DNA of 64,000 nt. Source: Ostrea edulis. Taxonomy: Eukaryota. The position numbers and the translations under genes are program-made. Position 1 is the stretch's first letter, and each line of letters begins with the position of its first letter. The stretch lies in NCBI RefSeq assembly GCF_947568905.1, contig NC_079167.1, positions 34,286,001 through 34,350,000 on the forward strand, read 5' to 3'. The notes beneath the pieces are model-generated. The model was not told where the DNA came from and made no database searches. It saw only the letters and a list, made by a program, of their open reading frames with translations. Of the stretch, positions 27,901 through 56,452 are shown one piece after another.

Positions 27901-30900
27901 ACTGCTTTATCCAAATATATGTCACACTACTGTACGTTTATCTGCTGTTCTGACCTTGTCCTGGTGCTCCATGGTTACGATGACCTTGGTTTTATGACTA
28001 GACACCAGGTCCATGGCTCCGCCCATTCCTTTCACAAGTCGACCCTGGGACATATCAAGACACAATAATCATGGACTACCACTGACTTTTAAACTTATAC
28101 AACAAGCATTTATCTTTAAAATAAGTATTTCATCAGGTAAAATAAGAGAAAAATATACTAAAGACTTTTCTTTTGACAAGATCTACTTACCGGAATCATC
28201 CGGTTGGCCAGATCTACTTACCGGAATCATCCAGTTGGCCAAATCTACTTACCGGAATCATCCAGTTGGCCAGATCTACTTACCCGAATCATCTGATTGG
28301 TCAGATCTATTTACCGGAATCATCCGATTGGTCAGATCTACTTACCGGAATCATCCAGTTGGCCAAATCTACTTATCGGAATCATCCAGTTGGCCAGATC
28401 TACTTACCCGAATCATCTGATTGGTCAGATCTATTTACCGGAATCATCCGATTGGTCAGATCTACTTACCGGAATCATCCAGTTGGCCAGATCTACTTAC
28501 CGGAATCATCCGATTGGCCAGATCTACTTACCGGAATCATCCAGTTGGCCAGATCTCCATAACGAGAAACTTGTAATGCCCCCAGGATGGTCAGGTTGAT
28601 GTGTCCTCTGTAATGTAATCACAAACTGTACTGTGTTGATCTGAAATTTATACTTATTTTTCATAAACACTGGATCCCAATCTCTTACCCTCTGATCATG
28701 GCAAACGATTCATCACTGGAAAAGAATGAACTGCCGCCGATATTGGTGACCGTCTGTTTCCCTGCGTTAATCAGATCTGCATCCACTTCACTGGCTAATG
28801 GGTATGGTCCCTGGTAATAAGAGGAAAATAAATTTCTGACAGTCTAATCAACATGTTTGTAACATTCACAACTGTATCTTCATTTCAATGTACAACATGT
28901 ACTACAATGATTTTTTTTCCAGCATAGTTACTAACCAATCCCATGATTCCATTCTCGCTCTGAAGATGGACTGTCATGCCAGGTGGGATGTGGTTACTGG
29001 CTAACATCGGCATTCCGATTCCCAGATTGGCTGAAATCACAAGAGACTAACGTCAAGATTACTTACAGATACTTTATATCACACAAGATAACTATTAGAT
29101 GCTGTAAATCTTGGATAAACTCGGAATCTTGGCATAAAAAGTTTACATAATTTTTCCCATCCATGATTTTCTGGACAAAATCGCAAAACATTGTGATAAG
29201 GTTTGAAAACAATACATCTATCTCAGTAGAATTTTCCAATGTAACCTAATCAACATAACAGACTGTCACTCATGAGAAGCCTTGTAGAAATGCCACATAC
29301 TATTATTGGGTCACATGGAAGGCGGGTCATGAATCTCTTGAAGCATTGCTTTCATCTATCATTATCATAACAGTGTAAAGACATTGAGGTACCTACCATA
29401 GATTCCGTCGTGAAACTCCAGAGCAGCTCGCCTGATGATTCTGTTCCGCAGCTCTGCAGCAGCATCATTTCCCTCCAATTCATCTGTGCCTTCTGTCCTT
29501 GTTGTTAATCTCTGTAAAGGGAGATAATGCATTCACAAAAATTATAAAATCACAACCACCCCTTGGTAGTCAGGATTTCCTGATGAATGTGAACTATCCC
29601 TTTTATTAATCTTAACAGTTTCATTTAAAGGTGACACAATTAGTGCAGTTTACTGGTCTTCCTTGAGGCTCTCTATTATCTTATATGAGGATTTATATCC
29701 CACACTTCTATCCCCTGTGAAGGGTTTTATCCTCTACTTCTATCCCCTGTAAGGAGTTTTAACCCCTACTTCTATCCCCTGTGAAGGGTTTTATCCTCTA
29801 CTTCTATCCCCTGTGAGGAGTTTTACCCCCCACTTCTATCCCCTGTGAGGAGTTTTATCCCCTATTTCTGTCCCCTGTGAGGAGTTTTATCCTCTACCTC
29901 TATCCCCTGTGAGGAGTTTTATCCCCTACCTCTATCCTCTTTTCATAGCTTGGCCCCTTGATGACCCTCTGCACGTATACATGTGGTACATGGATGTCCT
30001 CAGGGGGAATGGCTCCTACATCAACAATTTCTTCAACCTCTGCAATTGTGATCCGGCCTGCCTTACACATTGGAGGGTTAAAGTTACGAGCCGTCTTCCT
30101 ACAACGACAGGAAAAGAACTCAAAATTTCCTTAAGAGAAAGTCTTTCTACATTGTACATGTATTTCAATATAAAGCCATTTTCTTACTTTTGACTTTACT
30201 TACCTCAAAGGTAGATCATTTGAAATATTCAACCTATACAAAAGGTTATGGTGGTCTATGTTTTACTATCAGTTTCTCTTGTTCTATTAACATCCAGTTT
30301 GTCAGCTTTGTATACATTGACCTACCTACCTTAAGGTGAGTTTCCCCAAGTCTAATATCTTTGTACACCTTGATCTATTCACCTGAAGGTAAGGTTCCCC
30401 TATTTCTTAACTATGTACACCTTCACCCATTTACCTAAAGGGGAGGTTACCCAGTTTGTAAACTTTGTACACCTTCACCTATTTACTTGATGGTAAAATT
30501 GTCCAGTTTGTCTGTTTTATACACCTTGACCTATCTATCTAAAAGTGAGATTGCTTAGTTTGTCAGCTTTGTGTGCCTTGACCTATTTACCTGAAGGTGA
30601 GATTGCCCAGTTTGTCAGCTTTGTGTGCCTTGACCTATTTACCTGAAGGTGAGATTGCCCAGTTTGTCAGCTTTGTGTGCCTTGACCTATTTACCTGAAG
30701 GTGAGATTGCCCAGTTTGTCAGCTTTGTGTGCCTTGACCTATTTACCTGAAGGTGAGATTGCCCAGTTTGTCAGCTTAGTACACCTTGACCTATTTACCT
30801 GAAGGTGAGATTGCCCAGTTTGTCAGCTTTGTGTGCCTTGATCAGAGCGAAATCCCCTGTAATAGCTTCCTCCATGATGTACTTGAATCCATTGAATTCT

Positions 30901-52317: not shown

Positions 52318-54372
52318 TGCTTGTTCGTAAGTCTAAATAAATGATTTAATGTATAGGTCTTAAGCTTGTTAGTAAGTCTGAATAAATGATTTACTCTGTA
52401 GGTCTTAAGCTTGTTAGTAAGTCTGAATAAATGACTTACTCTGTAGAGCTTAAGCTTGTTAGTAAGTCTGAATAAATGATTTACTCTGTAGAGCTTAAGC
52501 TTGTTAGTAAATCTGAATAAATGATTTACTCTGTAGAGCTTAAGCTTGTTAGTAAGTCTGAATAAATGATTTACTCTGTAGAGCTTAAGCTTGTTAGTAA
52601 GTCTGAATAAATGACTTACTCTGTAGAGCTTAAGCTTGTTAGTAAGTCTGAATAAATGACTTACTCTGTAGAGCTTAAGCTTGTTAGTAAGTCTGAATAA
52701 ATGATTTACTCTGTAGAGCTTAAGCTTGTTAGTAAGTCTGAATAAATGACTTGCTCTGTAGAACTTAAGCTTGTTAGTAAGTCTGAATAAATGACTTACT
52801 CTGTAGAGCTTAAGCTTGTTAGTAAGTCTGAATAAATGACTTACTCTGTAGAGCTTAAGCTTGTTAGTAAGTCTGAATAAATGATTTACTCTGTAGGTCT
52901 TAAGCTTGTTAGTAAGTTTGAATAAATGACTTACTCTGTAGATCTTAAGCTTGTTAGTAAATCTGGATAAATGACTTACTCTGTAGGTCTTAAGCTTGTT
53001 AGTAAGTCTGAATAAATTTTTCATTGTATAGGTCTTAAGCTTGTTAGTAAGTCTAGATAAATGATTTACTCTGTATGTCTTAAGCTTGTTAGTAAGTCTG
53101 AATAAATGACTTGCTCTGTAGAGCTTAAGCTTGTTAGTAAGTCTGAATAAATGATTCACCGTGTAGGTCTTAAGCTTGTTAGTAAATCTGAATAAAAGAT
53201 TTACTCTGTAGCTCTTAAGCTTGTTAGTAAGCCTAAATAAATGATTTACTCTGTAGGTCTTAAGTTTGTTAGTATCTGAATAAATGACTTACTCTGTAGG
53301 TCTTAAGCTTGTTAGTAAATCTGGATAAATGACTTACTCTGTAGGTCTTAAGCTTGTTAGTAAGTCTGAATAAATGATTCACTGTATAGGTCTTAAGCTT
53401 GTTAGTAAGTCTGAATAAATGATTTACTCTGTAGGTCTTAAGCTTGTTAGTAAGTCTGAATAAATGACTTACTCTGTAGAGCTTAAGCTTGTTAGTAAGT
53501 CTGAATAAATGATTTACTCTGTATAGCTTAAGCTTGTTAGTAAATCTGGATAAATGATTCATTGTATAGGTTTTAAGCTTGTTAGTAAGTCTGAATAAAT
53601 GATTCATTATATAGGTCTTAAGCTCATTAGTAAGTCTGAATTAATGATTTACTCTGTATGTCTTAAGCTTGTTAGTAAATCTGAATAAATGATTCATTCT
53701 ATACATCTTAAGCTTGTTAGTAAGTCTGAATAAATGATTTACACTGTAGATCTTAAGCTTGTTAGTAAGTCTGGATAAATGATTCATTGTATAGGTCTTA
53801 AGCTTGTTAGTAAATCTGAATAAATGATTTACATGTACTCTGTATGTCTTAAGCTTGTTAGTAAGTCTGAATAAATGATTTACTCCGTATGTCTTAAGCT
53901 TGTTAGTAAATCTGGATAAATGACTTACTCTGTAGGTCTTAAGCTTGTTAGTAAATCTGGATAAATGACTTACTCTGTAGATCTTAAGCTTGTTAGTAAG
54001 TCTGGATAAATGACTTACTCTGTAGGTCTTAAGTTTGTTAGTAAGGTCTTAAGCTTGTTAGTAAGTCTGAATAAATGATTTACACTGTAGATCTTAAGCT
54101 TGTTAGTAAATCTGGATAAATGACTTACTCTGTAGGTCTTAAGCTTGTTAGTAAGTCTGGATAAATGATTTACTTCGTATGTCTTAAGCTTGTTAGTAAG
54201 TCTGAATTAATGATTTACACTGTAGATCTTAAGCTTGTTAGTAAGTCTGAATAAATTATTCATTGTATAGGTCTTAAGCTTGTTAGTAAGTCTGAATAAA
54301 TGATTTACTCTGTAGGTCTTAAGCTTGTTAGTAAGTCTGGATAAATGATTCATTGTATATGTCTTAAGCTTG
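52318..54372 (+). repeat. 45-bp satellite, ~45 copies
   Basis: AAGCTTGTTAGTAAGTCTGAATAAATGATTTACTCTGTAGGTCTT; one AAGCTT (HindIII site) in most units. Confidence 0.97.
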
Positions 54373-55152: not shown

Positions 55153-56452
55153 ATGGAAGTACCGATGATGTATCAAGCACGTCATCAGGTAAGTTATCCT
55201 ACTTCTTACCAGTACACAGAATTTTCTATTTACTTCCTCAATAGCCATTTTATAATCGTCTTGTTTCTCCTAGACTTCACCGCCATCCGCCGACTCGCGT
55301 TTTGATACCAACAGAAAACGAACGGCTGTAGACATGATGGCGCGTGACAAACTTTTCCAGTGGACAGAGTGTCGAGTTTGGATCAACTCCACCATCGTTA
55401 CAGACATCATGGAAACGACAAATCCCGCAGACAAGTCCCCATTCTCCACCCCCGTGTCAGAACGAAACGCAGTCACCACGTTTCTGAGGGATCCCAAGAA
55501 AGAGAAAACTGGAGAGTTGCTTAAGCAGAAGTACTGCGAAAGTATGGTGGGACTTCAGGGGAGCGCCTATTTCGTTTTTGGTCTACCGAGAGTTAAAAGA
55601 ATTGTTAAAGATGTCGATGAAGATCTGGGGAAGGGGTCTGACCAAAGCGAGAGTCTGGACAGACTGCGCGAGACGAGAAATGATCGACTGCAGGAGAGCA
55701 CGTATCTGCGAGAGTCCCGAAATGACCAACTAGGAGAAACTCGGACTGAAAAACTGGGGAATACGAAAAACGACCGTGTGATAGAACCCCAAAACAATCG
55801 GATCGGCGAGTCCAGAAATAACGGACTCAGAGAGACTTTAGACGACAGACGGTATCTGAGAGAGAGCAGCAGACCGGATCGTGAGAATAACCCCCCGGAC
55901 AGCTTCCGGTCCTCGAACAGAAGACAGGACGACTACAAACCAAATCCGCTGGGACAGAGCGGGGCATACGACCTCAGTAGCAGCTTCAGAGAGGATCTCC
56001 GCGAGAGCAGGAAGCCTAGAGATCCAGAGGAATCCAATCTATATTCCTCAAGGGTGGTTCCTGACCGGCAAGAACCAGCAGACGACAGGGGGATGTACGC
56101 TTCCCGAATATTACCAAACCGGAGCCCGGGGGAACTCCGAAAATCCCGCTACAACGATCCTCCATCTAACCGGAGCCCAGAGGAACTCCGAAAGTCCCGC
56201 TACAACGATCCTCCATCTAACCGGAGCCCAGGGGAACTCCGAAAGTCCCGCTACAACGATCCTCCTTCTTACGCCTTCGGTGGAATTCCGGATCAACAAC
56301 CAAGCCCCAGGGAGCAATACAATGATATTCAGAGCTGGCTGCCTTACGGTCAGTCCCCTAAACCCTCTCGGTCCCGAGAAGATTATCCTCTCCCTAATCC
56401 GCCCCCACACCGCGAGGCCAGCGGTCGATACACGGGTGTGATAAGGCGATAG
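55153..56452 (+). CDS. Uncharacterised protein with an R/D/E/S/P-rich C-terminus and three 17-aa repeats; probable exons 55153-55188 and 55274-56452
   Basis: The long, more GC-rich ORF stays open upstream to the acceptor TTGTTTCTCCTAG| at 55273. An upstream CAG|GTAAGT donor at 55188 is in phase 0 with ATG 55153. The repeat NRSPGELRKSRYNDPPS occurs three times (51 bp). No family recognised; the 5' end is uncertain. Confidence 0.65.

Follow-up and report, generated by a model that had tools for sequence, protein, structure and literature searches.

The flat oyster Ostrea edulis carries, on the minus strand of a 64-kb stretch of NC_079167.1 (34286001-34350000, no N present; the whole stretch is called the window here), a gene resembling that for succinyl-CoA:3-ketoacid CoA-transferase (SCOT/OXCT1). 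The introns after exons 3, 6, 7 and 11 of this gene open with a tandem array, the first unit of which consists of the end of the exon together with the donor splice site. These OXCT1 arrays are probably splice-junction minisatellites of the type described from amphioxus as 'mirages', and as such would be neutral by-products of local tandem duplication, which is frequent in this array-rich genome. Their number, at four of the 14 donors, is best read as a tail case of a background of about 3-5% across the genome, or as a local hot spot within it; this background concerns donors and acceptors alike.

The initial annotation of the window had pointed out arrays with units of 54, 52, 32 and 31 bp at these four donors. 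All four are confirmed, with 8-43 nt of exon in each unit. It had also described the acceptor of exon 3 as multiplied; the region in front of this acceptor is indeed doubled, the AG included, but the repeat holds no exon sequence. In window coordinates the features are:

48317-48480, minus strand: donor array of exon 3; unit of 54 bp, 3 copies (96-100% identical), 15 nt of exon, donor CAG/GTCAGT
30294-30841, minus strand: donor array of exon 6; unit of 52 bp, about 9 recognisable copies (10.5 by Tandem Repeats Finder, TRF), 43 nt of exon, donor CAG/GTAAAT
29696-29937, minus strand: donor array of exon 7; unit of 32 bp, 8 copies (TRF 7.6), 8-11 nt of exon, donor GAG/GTAGGG
28179-28556, minus strand: donor array of exon 11; unit of 31 bp, 12 copies (TRF 12.2), 24 nt of exon, donor GTAAGTA
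48600-48690, minus strand: 3' end of intron 2, present twice; the copies measure about 35 nt each and end in CTGTAG and CTGCAG

The unit of the exon 11 array has merely 7 intronic nucleotides, and the donor copies of the exon 3 array lie at 48466, 48412 and 48358. Across the four arrays the GT is kept in 25 of 28 downstream donor copies. The arrays make up 72% of intron 11, 56% of intron 7 and 72% of intron 6; with the arrays subtracted, these introns measure about 130-200 nt.

The units of the four arrays are mutually unrelated in sequence. In comparisons with the entire assembly (895 Mb, 52 contigs), the 2.8-kb region at 28100-30900, which contains three of the arrays, matched only itself, and the exon 3 array is likewise unique in the genome. 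Because the arrays are both unrelated and unique, they represent local events, in agreement with the earlier view of independent origins, and an origin from a mobile family is ruled out. The exon 3 array is adjoined by a dispersed repeat (48252-48338) that slightly overlaps its last unit. Matches to this repeat number at least 57 on the various chromosomes, and at several sites they follow one another in tandem at a spacing of about 140-145 bp. As the end of this repeat and the distal end of the array unit overlap, the duplication at exon 3 appears to have followed the repeat's insertion.

The internal structure of two arrays provides insight into their growth. The exon 11 array holds a duplicated block of four units, which forms a 124-bp higher-order repeat. 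The exon 6 array consists of two layers. Units 2-4 agree with the present exon junction in all but one position (51 of 52), and an older variant, located where the unit corresponds to two exon codons, is common to unit 1 and the distal units. Identity within this array drops from 92% to 77% with distance. Both the higher-order repeat and the layering point to repeated unequal exchange or slippage involving the exon copy, and we infer that the exon copy, being under selection, can re-seed the array. Accumulation of such arrays may be pictured as follows. A short segment that by chance spans an exon-intron border would be duplicated, and would then expand and be reshuffled by slippage or unequal exchange. 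The spliceosome would take the outermost, exon-attached donor, leaving the mRNA unaltered and the spare intronic donors silent and tolerated. Selection at the protein level would meanwhile keep the exon copy constant, and from this copy the array could be seeded anew.

The window is rich in tandem repeats: 38 arrays with a period of 10 or more cover 23% of its sequence, and 15 of them fall within the span of OXCT1. If arrays were placed at random, 0.33-0.40 donors would be expected inside a first unit, against the four observed. For exons 2-14, with their 13 donors, an analytical calculation puts the probability of four or more at 4e-4 to 8e-4, and Monte Carlo simulation gives 1.25e-4. The earlier statement that four of 14 donors exceeds random placement is thereby borne out within OXCT1 (P about 1e-4 to 8e-4), and for the gene taken alone the excess is real.

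As OXCT1 was chosen for showing the pattern, a control was built regardless of repeats. Its first part comprised all exons matching the Cpn60_TCP1 profile in nine CCT chaperonin genes (67 exon matches, 62 with a donor, 154 kb), the second 36 kinesin motor exons with 1.5-kb flanks, and each flagged array was inspected by eye. An array was counted strictly when its unit holds exon sequence and the splice dinucleotide; the borderline class takes in arrays that start at the dinucleotide or contain almost no exon sequence. Donors and acceptors, 98 of each, gave the same result, namely 3 strict cases, or 5 with the borderline ones, against a random expectation of 1.9. The strict arrays at donors have units of 58 bp (2 copies), 34 bp (14 copies) and 67 bp (2 copies), those at acceptors units of 65 bp (2 copies), 44 bp (10 copies) and 45 bp (16 copies) with 16-24 nt of exon. 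Both kinds of site pooled, 6 strict (p=0.18) or 10 loosely counted cases (p=0.006) stand against 3.8 expected, which is 1.6-2.6 times random. The rate is 3-5% per splice site (95% interval about 1-9%), in control loci of which tandem arrays cover 13-16%. The effect is alike at donors and acceptors and not specific to donors. At the control rate, four or more of 14 donors would be hit with a probability of 0.0007-0.0045 per gene, and some genes as dense in such arrays as OXCT1 are expected by chance among the many multi-exon genes of the genome.

Several control loci illustrate how closely arrays approach exons. One kinesin motor exon (locus L052, minus strand, 1124-1531) is preceded by a 44-bp array of about 10 copies, another (L050, minus strand, 842-1531) by a 45-bp array of about 16 copies. 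The units of both consist of the 3' end of the intron with its AG and 16-24 nt of the exon start, and are thus acceptor-side counterparts of the donor arrays. A small CCT exon (L015, at about 240-560; G000:C3:10284240-10284560, minus strand) lies between arrays of 32 bp in 26 copies and 33 bp in 10 copies, which end 6 nt before the acceptor and begin 17 nt after the donor, with neither site included. At this locus arrays seem to fill the introns right up to the splice signals.

Instead of chance placement, the mutational process itself might be seeded preferentially at exon-intron junctions, and OXCT1 would then exemplify a hot spot at the level of a gene. Candidate triggers are breaks or stalled forks that accompany splicing during transcription, and steps in chromatin or methylation at exon edges. 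The excess in OXCT1, its position above the control rate and the 1.6-2.6-fold surplus of control junction arrays, significant in the loose count, all speak in favour of such seeding. However, the strict control count does not significantly exceed random, OXCT1 was selected for showing the pattern, and short introns raise the share of surviving duplications that are forced to span a border. Moreover, the equal rates at donors and acceptors implicate neither U1 nor the donor, and a mutational process targeted to donors finds no support in them. We therefore regard preferential seeding as rather unlikely. A general form of it, in which junction-seeded duplication is more frequent than duplication elsewhere in the flat oyster, at donors and acceptors and with hot spots such as OXCT1, strikes us as doubtful too; if true, junction minisatellites would supply spare splice sites steadily and in a lineage-specific manner, and perhaps new introns or exons as well.

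The choice among the repeated donors can be followed in contigs of the runs X19 and X20, which hold a small share of the stretch, were taken as RNA by guess and inform on exons 6-14; among the listed runs that contain the stretch, none is recorded as RNA. In these RNA-like contigs, exons 6-7 (30097/30798), 7-8 (29511/29930) and 11-12 (28043/28531) are joined at the first, exon-attached donor, and depth is zero over the arrays as opposed to about 160-650 over the exons. This fits the neutral filter suggested in the initial annotation, since the upstream copy is the one that is spliced. Joints from a distal donor were absent from the X19/X20 contigs over exons 6-14, although low-level use could be missed in assembled contigs. 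The silence of the spare copies is supported but not proven. The spare donor motif (positions -3 to +6) is changed at 24 of 252 positions (9.5%), compared with 86 of 837 (10.3%) elsewhere in the unit (Fisher p=0.81), and we see no sign that selection either preserves or purges these motifs.

It is very unlikely that the spare donors are functional, either as sinks for U1 or as 'rheostats' of nonsense-mediated decay (NMD), tunable by copy number, that reduce the output of OXCT1. That GT is retained in most copies would suit such a role, and in sequences joined from an exon, the piece that a distal donor would retain and the following exon, a premature stop or a frameshift resulted for every distal donor, as had been claimed. 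This outcome is generic, however: read-through of all 13 introns checked reaches a stop within 1-16 codons, and because any intron read-through soon stops, the result is uninformative on an NMD device. Furthermore, no contig uses a distal donor, the donor motifs are conserved no better than the remainder of the unit, which speaks against the selection for decoy donors proposed earlier, housekeeping genes with no relation to OXCT1 show the same kind of array, also at their acceptors, and silent pseudo-sites have a precedent in human F7 (PMC1557585). A new regulatory device is not supported.

That the arrays are assembly artefacts has next to no probability. Short-read contigs do break within every array and collapse the repeats, but those of DNA run X1 (which may stem from the individual that was assembled) reach into the arrays from either side and cross five or more diverged units without mismatch, and raw X24 reads map on the arrays. 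In addition, 18 DNA runs from nine studies contain most words of the stretch. An error of collapse or expansion would also not yield the order of the variants, the higher-order repeat or the gradual decay seen in the units.

Some points weigh against our interpretation of the arrays as neutral by-products with a genome-wide background. The control is small, with 98 exons from two gene families whose ends were derived from matches to hidden Markov models (HMMs) and by eye. The density in OXCT1 (4 of 14, compared with about 0.35 expected) lies above the control rate (Fisher p=0.004-0.014), and a factor specific to this gene or region is possible. The RNA-like contigs are assembled, and rare isoforms disappear in such contigs; they stem from a run that carries the label of another organism, with about 1-5% divergence in the exons, and the arrays may be absent from that organism. 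The read evidence covers exons 6-14, and with them the arrays of exons 6, 7 and 11.

Comparable structures are known from other animals. In amphioxus, tandem repeats across exon-intron borders ('mirages') occur in Adh3, the globins BflGb6/9, troponin C and PGBD5; they are found at donors and at acceptors, in variable copy number, and leave mRNA splicing undisturbed, and their units measure 10-160 bp, with outer copies escaping homogenisation (PMC3087553, PMC3902484). The oyster units likewise span the exon-intron border, carry the splice signal and are tens of bases long, but they occur in a bivalve, with four such arrays in one gene. Allelic or somatic length instability has been shown for Adh3. 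In intron 7 of human F7 (IVS7), a 37-bp variable number tandem repeat (VNTR) begins with an element that lies across the donor of exon 7. Although functional, its pseudo-sites remain silent, as 5'-to-3' scanning picks only the most upstream site (PMC1557585). Here, too, identical donors trail the authentic one, and the RNA-like contigs show the first donor only. F7 differs in being a single array of few copies and in that its silence was proven by mutagenesis, as against assembled RNA-like contigs in the present case. In Rogers' model, introns are gained by tandem duplication of an AG/GT segment (cited in PMC3087553). The oyster arrays share this raw material, a duplicated exon end with donor; unlike in the model, however, their copies lie inside existing introns, form no new intron or exon, and none is spliced in the contigs. 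Structurally, the oyster arrays are head-to-tail, border-spanning and locally derived, as in mirages and the F7 repeat.

A literature search, limited to the papers accessible to it, found no report of splice-junction minisatellites in bivalves. The present arrays add a bivalve to the lancelets and single human genes in which mirage-type repeats are known. From the control comes a first estimate of the background made without selection for the pattern, about 3-5% of splice sites in the flat-oyster genome, equal for donors and acceptors. With up to 11 identical spare donors, the arrays are natural test cases for first-site choice by an invertebrate spliceosome. They are also a warning for annotation, as gene predictors may pick the wrong copy of a repeated splice site.

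The OXCT1 model (15 exons, 14 donors, 24918-51830) was put together by following stop-free frames, matches to the splice consensus and the phases of the exons, with exons searched singly, and its reading frame is uninterrupted through all exons. Pfam CoA_trans is matched by seven of ten exons scanned singly, as two successive passes of the profile, which indicates the fused A+B layout of SCOT; exon 7 resembles residues 187-242 of human SCOT1 (3dlx; E=1.9e-21). All eight GT..AG junctions of exons 6-14 occur in the RNA-like contigs exactly at the predicted bases, and loose contig ends match exons 5 and 15. The ends of exons 6, 7 and 11 are set by RNA-like junctions, that of exon 3 by homology and phase. 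Exon 1 is a prediction only, and its length agrees with about 100 nt found upstream of exon 2 in the longest contig. The exons are:

about 51830-51738, minus strand: predicted exon 1, a 31-codon presequence-like frame with a GTAAGA donor, phase 0
51294-51186, minus strand: exon 2
48599-48466, minus strand: exon 3
44500-44408, minus strand: exon 4
43701-43552, minus strand: exon 5
30905-30799, minus strand: exon 6
30098-29930, minus strand: exon 7
29511-29397, minus strand: exon 8
29030-28936, minus strand: exon 9
28810-28689, minus strand: exon 10
28607-28532, minus strand: exon 11
28044-27955, minus strand: exon 12
27871-27791, minus strand: exon 13
26802-26701, minus strand: exon 14
24959-24918, minus strand: exon 15

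Two further arrays, at 52.3 and 62.1 kb, had been put forward as additional candidates, and neither holds. The array at 52319-54372 (45 bp, about 45 copies) is placed upstream of the gene, outside the OXCT1 introns, by the predicted exon 1 with its GTAAGA donor. It lies about 500 bp upstream of that exon, likely in the promoter-upstream region, and its units carry GTAAGT on the plus strand. The array at 62.1 kb (47 bp) ends 21 nt short of what may be the acceptor of a different gene, and its units contain no AG, no splice site and no exon sequence; a 40-aa frame beside it had no Pfam match. A third array, in intron 3 (45511-47439, 29 bp in 65 copies), has GTAAGTA on the antisense strand and flanks without an exon, so that it is not exon-anchored.

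Intron 5 of OXCT1 contains, on the same strand as the gene (37542-38486, minus), an uninterrupted frame of 315 aa with matches to Syntaxin (E 1.7e-13) and SNARE (E 5.1e-16), which looks like a nested intronless syntaxin gene or a retrocopy. Similar cases were met among the control loci: L001 (G000:C1:30979076-30980653, minus strand) covers the Cpn60_TCP1 profile from 1 to 488 and L033 (G000:C5:72074096-72075004, plus strand) the kinesin motor profile from 1 to 325, each in a single stop-free frame, which suggests an intronless gene or a retrocopy in both cases. A further Cpn60_TCP1 copy akin to L001, at L002, has two stops. In intron 14, word depth in DNA run X1 reaches about 25,000 at 26500-26650, compared with about 35 nearby, with many loose ends; this segment is a dispersed repeat of very high copy number. 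Finally, the plus strand at 55274-56449 holds an open frame of 392 aa without a Pfam match, which contains an array of 51 bp in three copies at 56117-56269.

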